From the NCBI GenBank assembly GCA_964247055.1, contig OZ176052.1:8804001-8868000 (forward strand): a stretch of 64,000 bases of DNA, in the 5' to 3' direction. The DNA comes from Paragordius varius. Taxonomy: Eukaryota; Animalia; Nematomorpha. A program made the translations under genes and the position numbers. Under the pieces are notes generated by a model. It saw only the letters and a program-made list of their open reading frames with translations. It was not told where the DNA came from and did no database searches. Below, in pieces: positions 29,282 to 34,219 of the stretch (the first letter of the stretch is position 1; the number at the start of each line of letters is the position of its first letter).

Positions 29282-31969
29282 TTAACTTCCAAAAGCTTTA
29301 GATAGGGCTTTGATCCTTAGGGCCATAGGGGATGTGTCTGATGTTGAAGCGCTTGTTGTTGGTTTTAATTCAGATTCGTTTGTTTTAGTTTCTAAAGAGG
29401 CTGTTTTATCTGCTGCGCTACTACTTTTTGCCAATTGTTTTTGTGAATCTACTTTAGAAATTGAAACCGCCTTTTGTTTTTCTAAATTTGTTTCCTCGAT
29501 TTTTGGTGTTTTAGGTGTTTTTAAAGCGTCAATTTCTGATTTTTTCTGTTCAAGATTGACATTAGAACTGGATGTTTTCAAGATTGATTTAGTTTTTGTG
29601 GTTTCGGTTTTTGAAGAAATTCGGGTGGTTAGAGATTCTTTGTTGTCTAATTTATTTTGTGAAATTTTTGTTTCCACATTTTTTTCATTAATTTTAGAGT
29701 CACGCTTTTGAGTGATTTCATTTGGTTCATTCTTTAGCGTTGGAAGTTTGTTATCTGATGCTTTGAATGATAACCGTTTGTCTCTAATGGCAGCCAATGA
29801 TTTACGTCGTAATGCAGTGCTGCTCTTTTTTTCTTCAATAGATTCTTGACTCACTGATTTCGTTGGCTGATCCTTGGAATCTGATTGAATCGTTGTGACA
29901 GTTGAAGCTGACAATTTTTTGCTTAAAGATTTTCTACTTGATTTTAGGGGCTTATCATCAGACTTTTTAAGGGCGTGATAAGAGAGTGCATTTATCATCC
30001 ATACTTTGCAATCATCTCTTTCGAAGATATTGGGATTACTTAAACTAATTTTTAACAAGTCATCAACTGTTATCTCTTGATACCTAACGCATCGTAAAAA
30101 ATTTGACGTTAAAGGAATACGTAATGAATCCGCATTCAACCATTTTACTAAACCCTCAAGGATTTGTAATTCGTTATCTACTTTGATTTCATCTCTGGCT
30201 AATAATTTGAGTAACATATCGGGAGGTATAGCACAAAATTCCGGTTTCATCATCAAATCTTTAAATTCCTGATTCAAAAATGTTTGCATTCGCTTTTCCA
30301 ACGTAAGACTCTTTAATTTTTTCAATGTTTCCCCCAGTAATACAATTTCCCCTTCCTCGTAATACGTTTCAACAAAGTTTTTGCACATTGAAATCAAGGT
30401 CGGAATGCCAAATTTAATGGCGCACGTAAGTATACCCTCAACATTTTCCTTACTAATATGGATTTTATTTGTGTACAAATAATACAAGGTTTGCAATATG
30501 TTTGTAACACTGACATTTTCGTTGTCCATTAAAATTTTTCTAGGATCACCGCTTTCTTCTGTCAATTGTTCATATTTTTCACAAAACATAGTTAAAAGAA
30601 GCCGATGTACCGGCAATTTGTAATGACGAACGCGTATGTTTGCGTCACACATCGTATTTTCCATCCATAACTTAAACATGTAATCCAATAATTCGCATCC
30701 TCTATTAACTTCTCTGGGATGAGGTTTGGCCCTTGCTTGACTTTCATTATCTGCCCCAACTTCCTCATAAAAATGGGACCATAAATATTCTGCTGCATGT
30801 TTCCGTTTTTCCGTGTTATCCTTTTCAACTTTGGCCCCTATTCGTTCACCCAAATCTTTTATGTCAAATTGTTGTAATTGACTACGATACAAGTCTAAAT
30901 GTGCATCAAATCCTTGTGCGATTTTTACGTTTGGTATAATAAATTGATTAAAAGCTGAAATCGGAAGAAACAAAACTTTGACAATATCCGAATTCGCGAC
31001 AGCTTTTGCAAATCTCTTTTGGCCCGTTCTACATTCAATTTCTCCAAAAAACGCTCCGGCCTGTTCTGAAGCAATAAGGAACGATGCTTTAGATTCCAAA
31101 TCTAAATTATCTTTGTAAACTCGATCATATACTATATCCACTGATCCTTCATCAATAAAATACATTCCGGACGGATCGTCTCCTTGTCTGTAGATAAGAC
31201 TTGTACGTTTAAAAATTTGATATTTGAATAAATCAAGTACATTTTCCTGGTCGTCAAACTTAAGTAATTTAAACCAAGGAAATTTTTTGCGTAAAATTTT
31301 GAATATAATTTCTTTATCATCATTTTCGAAATCCATTTGTATATTACCTTCAGTGCTGTGGATTGGTGGTAGTTGAATGTGTTTTAAATGTTCATATGGA
31401 TCAAAAGTTTCAACATCAATTACATGTCTATCTAGGGGTCTTAGCCCTATTTTAACGTAATTCCCATCTATCAGTTGAATTCTTATCTCAGATGTTGTGG
31501 GAATAGGCGGTGGAGTAGGCACTGGTGAAGGTGAATTTGTAAGCCTTATATTTTTTTCTAATTTTTCCTTTCTTTTTTCATTTCTTTCAGCTTCATGAGG
31601 TGATTCTATCGTAACGACCTTATTTTTATTATCAGATTCGCTTGACATAGATTTATCAGGAGTTTCAGATTCTGAAATACTATGGTCATCCAATTCTTGT
31701 TCATCCATATCTTTCGGGTCATTTTTAAGGTGGCGCTCAGATTTTCCATCAATGTTATCCTCTTCAATCTCCAAGGGTGCTACGAAATGAGCCCATAAGA
31801 AATCTTGTGCGGTTTGTGCCGAAGATGTTTCTTTATGTACAGTTTTTCTCTCTTTAACTACCCCAATTTTTGTAGTTTCATCGTTTTTAGGAGCGACAGA
31901 TGCCGTACTTACATTGCTATTATTGTTTGTAATAGTTTCTATCCCGGCCATTGATGATTTGTAGAACAA
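29282..31969 (-). CDS. Intronless 895-aa protein (or 889 aa from ATG 31951): cyclic-nucleotide-binding domain + BTB + BACK + K/S/T-rich tail, no kelch repeats
   Basis: Long uninterrupted ORF. cNMP motifs IYRQGD..SGMYFIDEGSV and FFGEIECRTGQKRFAKAVA. BTB motifs CDANIRV...LPVHRLLL and LQTLYYLYT. BACK motifs EFCAIPPDMLLKLLARDEIKVDNELQILEGLVKWL and FLRCVRY. Confidence 0.85.
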   Translation of the reverse strand: MFYKSSMAGIETITNNNSNVSTASVAPKNDETTKIGVVKERKTVHKETSSAQTAQDFLWAHFVAPLEIEEDNIDGKSERHLKNDPKDMDEQELDDHSISESETPDKSMSSESDNKNKVVTIESPHEAERNEKRKEKLEKNIRLTNSPSPVPTPPPIPTTSEIRIQLIDGNYVKIGLRPLDRHVIDVETFDPYEHLKHIQLPPIHSTEGNIQMDFENDDKEIIFKILRKKFPWFKLLKFDDQENVLDLFKYQIFKRTSLIYRQGDDPSGMYFIDEGSVDIVYDRVYKDNLDLESKASFLIASEQAGAFFGEIECRTGQKRFAKAVANSDIVKVLFLPISAFNQFIIPNVKIAQGFDAHLDLYRSQLQQFDIKDLGERIGAKVEKDNTEKRKHAAEYLWSHFYEEVGADNESQARAKPHPREVNRGCELLDYMFKLWMENTMCDANIRVRHYKLPVHRLLLTMFCEKYEQLTEESGDPRKILMDNENVSVTNILQTLYYLYTNKIHISKENVEGILTCAIKFGIPTLISMCKNFVETYYEEGEIVLLGETLKKLKSLTLEKRMQTFLNQEFKDLMMKPEFCAIPPDMLLKLLARDEIKVDNELQILEGLVKWLNADSLRIPLTSNFLRCVRYQEITVDDLLKISLSNPNIFERDDCKVWMINALSYHALKKSDDKPLKSSRKSLSKKLSASTVTTIQSDSKDQPTKSVSQESIEEKKSSTALRRKSLAAIRDKRLSFKASDNKLPTLKNEPNEITQKRDSKINEKNVETKISQNKLDNKESLTTRISSKTETTKTKSILKTSSSNVNLEQKKSEIDALKTPKTPKIEETNLEKQKAVSISKVDSQKQLAKSSSAADKTASLETKTNESELKPTTSASTSDTSPMALRIKALSKAFGS

Positions 31970-32192
31970 TATGTTCTCAAAAAATAGTGTAAGTTATAAC
32001 CTATTTTTATTTAGTAAAAATTAAAGCACTTTTATTTATATTTTTATATACAACTTAATTTTGACAAAATATAAAAATTGAACATAAGCCATGCCATTTA
32101 TTGCACCATAAACAAGTAGGTTCAACCTTTTGAAAATGCCTCCAAGCTACATTATTTAATGGTGGCGTATTTAACATCAGCACTAACAATGG

Positions 32193-32203
32193 GCTGATTG
32201 GCT
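32193..32203 (-). promoter_or_regulatory. Possible CCAAT (NF-Y) box upstream of the cNMP-BTB-BACK gene
   Basis: AGCCAATCAGC on the minus strand, about 230 nt upstream of the ORF. Motif match only. Confidence 0.3.
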
Positions 32204-32528
32204 ATTAAATTCATTATCGATCTATCAAGGTGCACACAACTGGGTGATAAATGCTAAATATCTGGAAAAAAGCTTCAGAGTTCTATGGATATTTTGTTTT
32301 TTGGCTTACAAATCGACTAGAATAAAATTTCTCATTTTGAGATGTTTACATTTTGATAAAATAATAATATATCACAAATAAATATATTAGATTTATTTTT
32401 TAAGATAAATCAAATTTATTTGTTTATATATACACATGTGTGAATTATAAGTATAGTAGTAACGAGTAATATTGACATATATAGTACATGTAAAAATGAA
32501 TATATTTTTCTCTTCAAGTTTAATGCAT

Positions 32529-34219
32529 CTAATCCGATTGAGATCCACCTGATCGCTTATCATCATCAGCTGATCTGCGATCATCATCGTCGTCAGAATT
32601 GTCATGAGCCGCACCACCTCCATTGGTTCGACGCGAGGGCTCATCATCTGGTTCGTCGTCGTCGTCATCGTCGTTATTACGGCTATGGTCGGCAGCGTCA
32701 GTAGGAGAACGAGAATGAGATTTGTGACTCTCTGAACTTTTGTTTCTTCCATTATCATCACCATGGTCTTGCTCATCTTCATCATCATCCATGTGGCGAG
32801 CACGTGATGTTGATCGTTTGGCCGACGAGGAACGGCGACCATTATTATCGCTCCTTTTTCGCCGGGGTTCAGATCCACTCCGAGAACGGCTAAAGAAACG
32901 AAAAAAAGCATTTTAAACAAAAAATAGCTCTAGATAAGGTTTGGATTCAACCATTGCTGTTCGAAATAACCGGTCAATGAGTTTATGTGATATAAAAATT
33001 TAGCCTTAATTGCACCATTATTATCAATAGCATTTCAAACACTTAACTTCTTTTTTAGCAATGACTGTTTATGACTAAAGGGATTCAAACGAAATGATTC
33101 TAAATATACCTTCTTTTGTGTGAACGCGATTCCCGTTTTTCTTCGTAAAGTTTTATTTTACGTCCAAAAAATTCTGTCCCATAAAACTTATCAATGGCAT
33201 ATTTCATGTCCCGGGCCGAAACAAATTCAATCACACTAAAAGAAAAACAATAATGAACAAATTTTATACATAAATCTTTAAATTTACCGGTAACCAGCAA
33301 AAAAAACAACCAGTAGGCATTTATAATAAAAAATTAAAAAACGTACGCGTAATCGGAATGCATCTCAATATGTTCGATATCCCCACACTTTCTCAACAAA
33401 TCTTTCACATCCTGTGTTTTGACAAAAAAAGATAAAAATAAATTGTTTGATTGTATGGTGGATAGATAAGATAGTTGTGCGTTTGTTTGTACACGAAGTG
33501 TAAAGAGTAATTTGAATGTTTAGAAACAAAAATGTTGTTGTGAATTGTGAAAGGCAAAAGCTTTGGGGTTTTTTAAGAACGAACACAACACACAATTGAT
33601 ATTGAGCTTGTACAATTGTTTGTGTATCAGAATTGATATTTGAAAAACTATTTTGGATTTTATATATATGGTTATACATAATGGATGGATAGATTGACTT
33701 GTTGATAAATGTTAATAAAAATTAAAAAATAATTACATGTTTGGTGGCACGACTGGATAGGTTTTCTAAAACGCATTTGTGGGTATAACGTGTTCGATTT
33801 CTAGAATAAAACACGTTTATTAAGATAAAATATTATATTTGGTTAAAATATTAATAAGTAAATATTTTGTATATGATTAAAAATACCTTTCAGGTTCCTC
33901 ATATCGATCGTTATTGCGCCGCGAATAATCTATGCCTCTTTCCCTATCTTTCCAGGCGTCTCGTCCATGCGGTGTTCCTTTGGCGTGTTCGACTACTACA
34001 CGATCTCCACATAGTTCTCGTCCGTTTAACTCATAGACTGCATCGTCAGCATCTCGATCATCTTCAAATTCCTAAACAAATTAAAAAAACATTTACCACA
34101 AATCCATATCCATTTTTCAACATAATTTCTTTAACTCTCCCATAATTTTTGAAGAATCTTTCAATATCTCGTTCTCTAACACGGTGGCTAAGTCGTCCAA
34201 TGTATACACGTGAAGCCAT
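32529..34219 (-). CDS. SRSF6: SR splicing factor of the SRSF4/5/6 (B52/SRp55) family, divergent, about 307 aa
   Basis: Exons 34219-34097, 34071-33887, 33800-33737, 33411-33347, 33235-33110, 32889-32529. RRM1 [27 protein letters not shown]...[39 protein letters not shown]. RRM2 VLENLSSR...VIEFVSARDMKYAIDKFYGTEFFGRKIKL. Confidence 0.88.

Follow-up and report, generated by a model that had tools for sequence, protein, structure and literature searches.

A 64,000-nt stretch of contig OZ176052.1 of Paragordius varius (Nematomorpha), hereafter the window, in whose positions all coordinates are given, carries what looks like a genuine single-exon gene confined to horsehair worms, where it is present in two genomes (Table 1). 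The gene joins a CNB domain to a BTB–BACK module in one protein, a combination that appears to be new. Its stop-free frame extends over 903 codons, exceeding the runner-up in the window (223 codons) by a factor of four; at the window's stop-triplet frequency, the chance of an open frame of this length is about 5e-31 (the DNA has 27% G+C). The frame is continuous and the gene intron-free, which bears out the intact, intronless 895-codon ORF described in an earlier note on this DNA. At its N-terminus, the 889-residue product aligns with its Gordionus ortholog, P0001, in the region of the start annotated there. Ultra-short in-frame introns hidden in the domain core are unlikely: compared with Gordionus, the folded domains hold just two extra residues, and the alignment contains no run of 7–11 extra residues anywhere in the core. 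An intron of this kind may be present within the disordered N-terminus or tail.

Table 1 Features of the fusion gene and its product, in window positions
Feature	Residues	Position	Strand	Basis
Whole ORF as listed		29282..31969	(-)	895 codons counted from TTG, stop included
Probable CDS, single exon, 889 aa		29282..31951	(-)	First ATG is codon 7 (31951)
N-terminal motif SAQ.A.DFLWAHFVAPLEIEED	50-71	31757..31822	(-)	First [DE][FY]LW[AS]HF copy
Proline-rich SPSPvPTPPPiP, then IDGNYVKIGLRP	146-178	31436..31534	(-)	Block conserved with respect to Gordionus
CNB fold	210-367	30869..31342	(-)	PF00027; AlphaFold; Foldseek
Phosphate-binding cassette FGEIECRTGQKRFAKA	308-323	31001..31048	(-)	Aligned to RII-alpha FGELALVTNKPRAASA
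Linker motif AAEYLWSHFYEEvGA	392-406	30752..30796	(-)	Second [DE][FY]LW[AS]HF copy
BTB domain	420-536	30362..30712	(-)	PF00651; KLHL3 1.5e-14; pLDDT ~86-97
BTB alpha3 and alpha3-beta4 loop YEQLTEESGDPR	466-477	30539..30574	(-)	HMMER alignments to KLHL3, KEAP1
3-box and BACK helical domain	537-672	29954..30361	(-)	PF07707; Foldseek match KLHL11
Ser/Lys/Thr-rich tail	673-895	29285..29953	(-)	Composition; no Pfam match

The protein is composed of a disordered, motif-bearing N-terminus, one CNB, a KLHL-type BTB–BACK module and a probably disordered Ser/Lys/Thr tail. Pfam recognises cNMP_binding (residues 253–344, 43.7 bits with a cut-off of 27.5, 2.7e-11), BTB (residues 436–535, 46.9 bits with a cut-off of 20.5, 3.4e-12) and BACK (residues 556–640, 57 bits with a cut-off of 20.9, 2.2e-15). 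The three domains named in the earlier note are therefore real, with bounds near its estimates, and both modules are supported by HMM scores above threshold. AlphaFold models the CNB (210–367) and the BTB–BACK region (420–672) confidently. No kelch repeat or any further Pfam family is found in the protein at E ≤ 1; the tail stands in the place of the repeats, as had been described, and its composition (18% Ser, 17.5% Lys and 11% Thr) agrees with that description. Besides the CNB, neither Pfam nor the model yields a folded candidate substrate-binding domain, whether a kelch propeller or PHR.

The regions outside the folded domains contain conserved elements. Pfam recognises nothing in the N-terminal 208 residues, which are modelled with low confidence and include the first copy of a motif, [DE][FY]LW[AS]HF, found in the two orthologs only. 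Around this copy, 19 of 22 residues are the same in both orthologs and DFLWAHFVAPLEIEED is invariant, with low pLDDT. The second copy lies in the linker between the CNB and the BTB domain, where 14 of 15 residues are the same in both orthologs and a helix (386–400) is predicted with low confidence. A weak β-hairpin is predicted, also with low confidence, for the proline-rich block and the segment that follows it. The tail is weakly conserved, differs in length in Gordionus and is probably disordered; the AlphaFold model ends at residue 690.

Distribution, age and selection

The three Pfam domains recur in Gordionus P0001 (795 residues), which matches the P. varius protein at 50% identity in the core and likewise comes from an intronless gene. 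When 1.84 billion representatives were searched exhaustively with HMMER, it was the sole protein with the same architecture among the best 150 matches, which we inspected; none of the other 149 holds both modules together. The best BTB–BACK matches are kelch-less proteins from metagenome and transcriptome assemblies (P0002–P0024; 8e-25 and weaker, 22–30% identity). None of them has a CNB: their N-terminal regions are without a Pfam match, and a search at E ≤ 1 for a CNB hidden in these regions found none. Some of these proteins are encoded on intron-free, gene-dense contigs. The combination of CNB and BTB–BACK was not found in the PDB. In the ESM Atlas, a feature search gave no usable match and a shape search returned kelch-type BTB–BACK clusters, none with a CNB. 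A literature search for CNB, BTB and cullin found no such protein, and cyclic nucleotides go unmentioned in a survey of BTB architectures from 2005. The combination is thus as unfamiliar in animals as the earlier note supposed, and the protein, found in the P. varius genome and in Gordionus only, is lineage-specific, as it had also proposed.

A recent chimeric origin, which had been offered to account for the lack of introns, does not hold. Gordionus is a distant species (PKA-RII exons are 45–84% identical between it and P. varius), and because its ortholog shares both the architecture and the intronless state, the fusion is old within hairworms. Within 6 kb on each side, only the gene itself matches between the two genomes. 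Neither a parent gene nor a paralog was found in the P. varius genome, where the other matches are to BTB–BACK at E ~1e-6, and retroposition is left without a parent gene or paralog to argue for or against it. The best single relative of the CNB is a hairworm PKA-RII-like protein, P0133 (common segment QGD[DN]P.GMYFI.EG.V.I). From such sequence likeness, descent from the second CNB of the PKA regulatory subunit type II would be the best explanation. The likeness to PKA-RII CNB-B includes a long β4–β5 insert, whereas the hairworm protein differs from PKA-RII in having a single CNB and in lacking the dimerisation/docking domain and the kinase-inhibitor site.

The locus might instead hold a frame that is not functional, an untranscribed or decaying retrocopy. 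Such a reading draws on the intronless state of the frame amid neighbouring genes that have introns, and on the RNA data: no support for the locus was found in the runs searched, none of the runs recorded as RNA contains it, and almost none of its words occur in five small runs presumed to be RNA. However, the length of the open frame, the intact ortholog, and the conservation of domain cores and motifs all count against a retrocopy, as do the variants listed from other individuals. Those in the core are synonymous (5) or conservative (2), whereas those in the tail divide into 11 non-synonymous and 5 synonymous ones; all listed indels within the CDS preserve the frame, among them a 9-nt deletion that other individuals carry in the tail. 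The core is shown to be under purifying selection, and we regard a non-functional frame as very improbable.

The sequencing runs that do contain the locus (X1–X3) look like DNA: their contigs total 150–240 Mb, depth is even over genes and spacers, and their bubbles resemble two haplotypes. An X3 contig spanning 28803–32023 was rejected as a transcript for this reason. A joint in X4 from 31738 to 32541 was likewise rejected as an upstream splice, having no GT-AG on either strand, a 4-nt microhomology and a depth of 4.

The ligand pocket of the CNB domain

The CNB model consists of N-terminal helices, an eight-stranded β-barrel, a cassette helix and C-terminal hinge/lid helices (pLDDT 86–96). 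By Foldseek, it matches PKA/PKG CNB-B domains with TM scores of 0.77–0.86 by target, and the best sequence match for residues 210–367 is PKA RII-alpha CNB-B (1.1e-14). A conserved tyrosine, Tyr361, lies close to the capping position. The phosphate-binding cassette retains G309, E310 and R319 at canonical spacing, as the earlier note had observed, and all three are conserved in Gordionus, the cassette of which is FGEVECKTRNGRFAKA.

Two other positions of the cassette deviate, a feature that the earlier note had not remarked. Position 4 is E312 in place of Ala, and the residue following the Arg is F320 in place of Ala/Ser/Thr; both changes are common to the two orthologs. The residue before the Arg has also changed, from Pro to Lys/Gly. 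Thus, the PKA-RII cassette reads GELAL...PRAAS and the hairworm cassette GEIEC...KRFAK. All seven other cassettes found in the P. varius genome are canonical, with the pattern GE[LI]A[LI]...R[AST]A. In binders of cAMP or cGMP, position 4 is a small residue (Ala/Gly/Ser/Cys) and the Arg is followed by Ala/Ser/Thr; the CNB of the fusion protein has neither. The proposed regulation by cAMP or cGMP therefore keeps its Gly-Glu and Arg but is weakened by E312 and F320. In trypanosome PKA-R, the residue equivalent to PKA-RI-alpha Ala202 is a Glu that clashes with the cyclic phosphate. Nanomolar activation of TbPKAR by cyclic nucleotides requires the replacement of this Glu by Ala, and a TbPKAR cassette bearing both Glu and Arg responded to cIMP alone, at 24 uM (PMC10959531).

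One way to read these changes is that the CNB binds no ligand and acts as a protein-binding or structural module, in the manner of KCNH-type CNB-homology domains, filling in for the absent kelch propeller by binding the substrate within a constitutive BTB–BACK adaptor or scaffold. Two consensus positions of the cassette are derived, the Pro ahead of the Arg is replaced, and the charges of Glu312 and Arg319 might cancel out within the phosphate site; the protein, moreover, offers no other folded candidate for substrate binding. However, Gly-Glu and Arg are invariant despite an ortholog identity of ~50%, which is unexpected for a dead pocket, and the derived residues (E, C and R-F-A-K-A) are themselves conserved, suggesting a specific pocket. 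We consider a ligand-free CNB unlikely.

A second reading takes the pocket to have shifted towards a ligand that is not cyclic, for instance a purine nucleoside, in parallel to the G-E-x-E 'ribose-binding cassette' of trypanosomatids. G309-E310-I311-E312 has the same form as G308-E309-x-E311 of TbPKAR, and the residue after position 11 is bulky and hydrophobic in both proteins (Val in TbPKAR, Phe in the hairworm protein). In TbPKAR, the Glu contacts the 3' and 5' hydroxyls of the ribose and excludes a cyclic phosphate, and restoring the Arg did not significantly change the response to inosine (PMC10959531). Against this reading, the hairworm protein retains R319, whereas trypanosomatids have lost the Arg, a polar residue having taken its place. 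Moreover, the likeness spans only three aligned positions. TbPKAR and TcPKAR (PDB 6FLO, 6HYI), which have the Glu at the RI-alpha Ala202 position in common with the hairworm CNB, are two-CNB kinase regulators and not BTB fusions; Foldseek returned chains of 6FLO and 6H4G among its matches. Since the changes do not go back to common descent, the likeness would be convergent. We judge a pocket retuned in this way to be distinctly unlikely.

The BTB–BACK module and Cullin-3

The BTB–BACK region has a KLHL-like fold that includes the 3-box helices, as established by Pfam and Foldseek, and its nearest structures are those of KLHL11 (TM 0.81 by target), KLHL3 and KBTBD2. It shares BTB and 3-box/BACK with the KLHL/KBTBD adaptors (KLHL3 4HXI, KLHL11 4AP2) at 17–28% identity. 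Unlike these adaptors, the hairworm protein carries a CNB N-terminal of the BTB domain and ends in a probably disordered Ser/Lys/Thr tail without a kelch propeller.

The surface through which such adaptors hold Cul3 is altered. The phi-x-E motif is a Cul3-contact element in the α3–β4 region that inserts into Cul3; in BTB–Cul3 structures the phi residue is the one that buries the most surface, and in KLHL3 each of the mutations A77E, M78V and E85A eliminates measurable Cul3 binding (PMC3616122). M83-S84-E85 of KLHL3 and L-R-E of KEAP1 align with S473-G474-D475, in a loop where the alignment is gapped, and a large hydrophobic residue is absent throughout 471–477. The corresponding site in Gordionus is S-E-D. 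KLHL3 A77 and M78 align with E467 and Q468 (HMMER). The phi-x-E motif is also missing in most of the kelch-less relatives P0002–P0024. The earlier note's candidate Cullin-3 adaptor keeps a KLHL-type BTB–BACK module but is weakened at the contact residues, the phi-x-E motif and the equivalents of A77 and M78 having all been replaced. Given a derived CNB pocket and a derived Cul3-contact loop, we would expect this protein neither to bind cAMP or cGMP canonically with high affinity nor to engage Cul3 through a canonical interface of the KLHL type.

In the P. varius genome, Cul3 is present, with both its N-terminal extension (RMRIRAFP MTMDEKY) and its H2 and H5 helices conserved. A complex prediction scored 0.00 for BTB–BACK with three exon-encoded Cul3 pieces supplied as separate chains, a design that left out the 21-residue N-terminal extension and was unlike the calibration of the tool; the score speaks neither for binding nor against it.

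These observations bear on the strict form of the first proposal: a CNB with canonical cAMP or cGMP binding, a BTB–BACK module that recruits Cullin-3, and cyclic nucleotides that directly gate the ubiquitination of a substrate, which the CNB, the N-terminal motifs or the tail would hold. In favour of this proposal are a complete CNB fold with hinge/lid helices and a tyrosine near the capping position, the canonically spaced Gly-Glu and Arg, a BTB–BACK fold closest to that of Cul3-bound KLHL11, KLHL3 and KBTBD2, and a conserved Cul3 in the same genome. It is opposed by Glu312 and Phe320, at positions where the other cassettes of the genome and PKA-RII have Ala and Ala/Ser/Thr, by the cIMP-only response of the Glu- and Arg-bearing TbPKAR cassette, and by a Ser as the phi residue. 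Direct gating by cyclic nucleotides is in our view doubtful.

Proposed mode of action

The best explanation of the whole, which we favour tentatively and place somewhat short of an even chance, is a hairworm-restricted gene encoding a dimeric, small-molecule-sensing BTB–BACK adaptor that is a possible partner of Cullin-3. That the protein senses a ligand, dimerises and is linked to a cullin is what we infer. In its most likely mode of action, a ligand entering the CNB pocket would shift the C-terminal hinge/lid helices, which lead via a conserved linker of ~50 residues into the BTB–BACK scaffold, and their movement would alter what the scaffold binds. By analogy with KLHL proteins, the partner of the scaffold could be Cullin-3. 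A more specific version, in which the G-E-x-E ... R-F pocket would be retuned to, for example, a purine nucleoside and would couple that signal to Cullin-3-type turnover, convergently with trypanosomatid PKA-R, is a long shot.

Our claim for the fusion protein is a modest one. To our knowledge, cyclic-nucleotide signals reach ubiquitin ligases only indirectly, via kinases or via adaptors that degrade components of the pathway. If the favoured explanation is true, a CNB sensor and a BTB–BACK module in one chain would constitute a direct, one-protein link from a small-molecule signal to a cullin-type scaffold, and the design of ligand-switchable degraders could naturally start from this protein. 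The Ala-to-Glu change in its pocket is the same as that which made trypanosome PKA a nucleoside rather than a cAMP sensor, and the protein therefore tests whether CNB domains have been repurposed more than once. The gene is limited to a phylum of host-manipulating parasites with scant molecular biology, and its domains would be cheap to test as recombinant proteins.

Architecture and distribution of the CNB-BTB gene

The CNB-BTB gene is most likely a real, lineage-restricted gene, the predicted product of which combines a single RII-B-derived sensor fold with a KLHL-type BTB-BACK module. Its intron-free frame comprises 903 codons from stop to stop and 889 from the first ATG (31951). It is the longest in the window (27% G+C), the runner-up having 223 codons. 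The chance of an open frame of this length, calculated from the window's stop-triplet frequency, is ~5e-31, and we consider it highly improbable that the frame is a non-gene. Three Pfam domains exceed their curated thresholds (see table). The description and coordinates in the earlier note are correct. Neither kelch repeats nor any fourth Pfam family was found in the protein at E ≤ 1. Among PDB sequences, KLHL3 is nearest to the BTB-BACK part (1.5e-14) and the second CNB of PKA RII-alpha/RII-beta is nearest to the CNB part (1.1e-14 to 4e-13). In the tail (residues 673-895), Ser accounts for 18% of the residues, Lys for 17.5% and Thr for 11%.

Features of the CNB-BTB gene, its predicted protein and the adjacent frame
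Feature	Window position	Strand	Residues	Basis or description
CNB-BTB open frame	29282-31969	minus		895 codons counted from TTG
Conserved motif SAQ.A.DFLWAHFVAPLEIEED			50-71	ortholog comparison
[DE][FY]LW[AS]HF, first copy	31784-31804	minus	56-62	
Conserved proline-rich stretch, then IDGNYVKIGLRP			146-178	ortholog comparison
cNMP_binding			253-344	Pfam, 43.7 bits, above curated threshold
Conserved AAEYLWSHFYEE.GA			392-406	ortholog comparison
[DE][FY]LW[AS]HF, second copy	30770-30790	minus	394-400	
BTB			436-535	Pfam, 46.9 bits, above curated threshold
BACK			556-640	Pfam, 57 bits, above curated threshold
Frame DAADHSRNNDDDDDDEPDDE...RRSADDDKRSGGSQSD (stop)	32527-32700	minus		Asp-, Ser-, Arg-rich

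A word-indexed search of 5.8 billion proteins returned a single relative, P0001 from Gordionus sp. (Nematomorpha), a 795-aa protein with 50% identity across 99% of the core and a matching set of three Pfam domains. Exhaustive HMMER comparison with 1.84 billion representatives placed P0001 at 1.8e-155; the next match (7.8e-25) covers BTB-BACK only. When each module was re-scanned separately, P0001 alone contained both among the best 150 of 1936 matches, a range that divergent two-domain proteins under about 58 bits could escape. The combination had been proposed to be lineage-specific, and this ortholog is the sole second case within that range. Ten of the nearest BTB-BACK relatives were scanned N-terminally for a CNB, and none was detected even at E ≤ 1. 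Feature search of the ESM Atlas yielded nothing usable, and its shape search returned kelch-type clusters only, with no CNB-BTB combination. No publication describing a protein of this kind came up in full-text search, and a classic survey of BTB architectures makes no mention of cyclic nucleotides. The component domains are well known; their combination appears new as far as these searches reach, and is seen in one small phylum only.

In Gordionus, the gene spans 2388 bases without interruption and is therefore likewise intronless. The two hairworms are not close, as their PKA-RII genes share only 45-84% identity exon by exon; the fusion and its intronless state are therefore older than the species split. 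The recent chimeric origin suggested previously thus finds no support; retroposition, the alternative suggested with it, is a possible origin. The Gordionus locus has no other match to the window within 6 kb on each side, and no paralog was found in the 110 Mb of the hairworm's own genome searched.

Among the matches listed, the best single CNB relative is Gordionus P0133, annotated 'cAMP-dependent protein kinase type II regulatory subunit-like', and the match falls in its second CNB. The CNB stretch QGDDPSGMYFIDEGSVDIV is nearer to hairworm RII-B (QGDNPDGMYFIKEGVVKII) than to mammalian RII-B (QGEKADSFYIIESGEVSI), suggesting that the module originated as a copy of the RII gene of this very lineage. 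No close parent of the BTB-BACK part was found among the matches listed, in which its best relatives are kelch-less, 22-30% identical and from metagenome or transcriptome assemblies. The nearest, the P0003/P0151 cluster (~610 aa, kelch-less), are encoded on JGI metagenome contigs (L014-L017) that are gene-dense, up to 228 kb long and have no introns called; a ~730-aa LRR protein always adjoins the cluster's gene. These contigs may derive from a protist, a giant virus or a symbiont.

Predicted fold and ligand pocket

Residues 1-690 were modelled with AlphaFold2 using an alignment of the ortholog, 44 BTB-BACK and 7 CNB fragments, the register of which was checked. pLDDT is mostly 86-97 at residues 210-367 and 420-672; confidence is low for residues 1-208 and 368-414. 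The modelled CNB contains the N-terminal helices, the barrel and a cassette helix (310-315), and its C-terminal helices 337-344 and 348-367 are counterparts of the hinge and lid. The 3-box helices are present elsewhere in the model. Foldseek comparison with the PDB retrieved two groups: KLHL11 BTB-BACK (TM 0.81 by target), KLHL3, KBTBD2 and vaccinia A55; and the CNB domains of PKA-RII, PKG (CNB-B), HCN2 and Trypanosoma PKA-R (TM ≤ 0.86 by target).

The phosphate-binding cassette is FGEIECRTGQKRFAKA, compared with FGELALVTNKPRAASA in RII-alpha CNB-B and FGEVECKTRNGRFAKA in Gordionus. Gly-Glu is retained in this alignment, and so is the Arg at cassette position 11, in agreement with the earlier note. 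The note overlooked Glu at position 4, equivalent to Ala202 of PKA RI-alpha and present in both hairworms, and Phe directly after the Arg. The latter position is occupied by Ala in proteins that bind cAMP and by Thr in those that bind cGMP. All seven other cassettes found in the hairworm's own genome fit GE[LI]A[LI]....[PQ]R[AST]A; their probable sources are PKA-RI, PKA-RII, PKG and related proteins, and ordinary cAMP/cGMP sensors therefore exist in this animal. These canonical cassettes (loci L020, L022, L024, L027, L029 and L032) include FGELALIYGTPRAAT, FGELALLYNCPRTAS and FGELALLTNQPRSAT.

The hairworm cassette bears exactly the Ala-to-Glu change of trypanosomatid PKA-R, in which the 'ribose-binding cassette' is G308-E309-x-E311 (PMC10959531). 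There, the Glu contacts the 3' and 5' hydroxyls of the inosine ribose; it sits where the Arg side chain lies in the mammalian proteins, and it clashes with a cyclic phosphate (PMC10959531). With Arg restored and Glu kept, trypanosomatid PKA-R responds, among cyclic nucleotides, to cIMP only (24 uM), its inosine response being without significant change; nanomolar cyclic-nucleotide activation also needs Glu to be changed to Ala (PMC10959531). With its Glu, Arg and bulky residue after the Arg, the hairworm cassette resembles this Glu-plus-Arg intermediate, which makes canonical high-affinity cAMP/cGMP binding unlikely by analogy. Instead, the pocket may bind cNMPs weakly or accept a different ligand, for example a nucleoside, or it may be closed through pairing of E312 with R319. 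A pocket retuned to a nucleoside-type ligand would fit the identity with the trypanosomatid change, and we regard it as rather improbable. A ligand-dead CNB serving as a binding module is also unlikely, though less so; the whole derived cassette is conserved, which argues against a decayed pocket. At the key position the cassette appears convergent with the trypanosome solution, in our view the most interesting detail of this sequence.

The putative Cul3 interface

In KLHL3, the phi-x-E motif is M83-S84-E85; phi has the largest buried surface of any residue across three BTB-Cul3 structures, and A77E, M78V and E85A each abolish measurable Cul3 binding (PMC3616122). HMMER aligns KLHL3 A77, M78, M83, S84 and E85 with E467, Q468, S473, G474 and D475, across a gapped loop shorter than that of KLHL proteins, and KEAP1 L-R-E with the identical S-G-D. 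Gordionus has P/T at the A77/M78 positions and S-E-D in place of phi-x-E. No large hydrophobic residue occurs within residues 471-477 of the CNB-BTB protein. Only 3 or 4 of the 44 nearest BTB-BACK relatives, those of typical KLHL length, have M/F-x-E; the remainder lack it, like the hairworm protein. A second contact in KLHL11 is made by the Cul3 N-terminal extension, in a groove at the 3-box (PMC3597819).

The hairworm's own genome contains a very conserved Cul3 gene, whose exons encode RMRIRAFP, MTMDEKY (continuing with 23 protein letters not shown) and WNDHQTAMIMIRDILMYM. When BTB-BACK and three exon-encoded pieces of Cul3 were modelled as separate chains, the complex score was 0.00, readable neither way. 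The start of the Cul3 gene (L007:1381-1809; G000:C1:6160939-6161367, plus strand) is split by two in-frame 24-nt GT..AG introns, at L007:1444-1467 and 1666-1689, each with a stop codon; once joined, the exons again encode the conserved RIRAFP|MTMDEKY and HLIEK|VRKD.

The hinge and lid helices, which are predicted to run through the conserved linker into the BTB, would shift when a ligand binds, as they do in all CNB proteins characterised so far; on the model of KLHL proteins, BTB-BACK would dimerise and could dock Cul3. A strictly cAMP/cGMP-gated Cul3 adaptor is doubtful, since both hallmark interaction motifs, the cassette and phi-x-E, deviate. We tentatively favour a dimeric adaptor that senses a ligand, in which the pocket is non-canonical and the Cul3 interface either non-canonical or absent.

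Conservation, variation and surroundings of the locus

The blocks conserved between orthologs include both domain cores, and the probably disordered flanks carry conserved short motifs (see table). Both copies of [DE][FY]LW[AS]HF are at equivalent places in the Gordionus ortholog; the motif was absent from the rest of the window and from the other proteins compared (~160), and comparison with known motifs gave no match.

Contigs of four public sequencing runs (X1-X4) cover the locus and yielded a partial list of variants, beyond which there are 107 further differences. In core codons 200-680, those listed comprise five synonymous changes and two conservative ones (V597I and R592K); in the tail they comprise 11 non-synonymous and 5 synonymous changes. 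The CDS indels listed all keep the frame (+3, +3, +1 with +2, -9); two additional X3 insertions sit upstream of the first ATG. X1-X3 look like DNA runs because their contigs total 150-240 Mb, depth is uniform over genes and spacers, and bubbles resemble two haplotypes; their contigs over the locus therefore do not count as RNA evidence. Almost none of the locus's words occurred in five small runs that were guessed to be RNA.

A join between 31738 and 32541, present in one low-depth contig of X4 (a run labelled as another organism), was rejected as a splice: it has a 4-nt microhomology (ATCT) and no GT-AG on either strand, and probably reflects chimeric assembly of the contig or a variant with a deletion. 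In X1-X3 contigs, 33342 is joined to 32289 via 34 other letters, with a depth ranging from roughly half of the local value to all of it. The pattern suggests a structural variant, a second haplotype or a repeat located within or next to the upstream SR-protein gene. The adjacent Asp-, Ser- and Arg-rich frame, presumably the last exon of that gene, ends ~575 bases upstream of the CNB-BTB ATG, which would leave a short spacer for the 3' end of the SR-protein gene and the CNB-BTB promoter.
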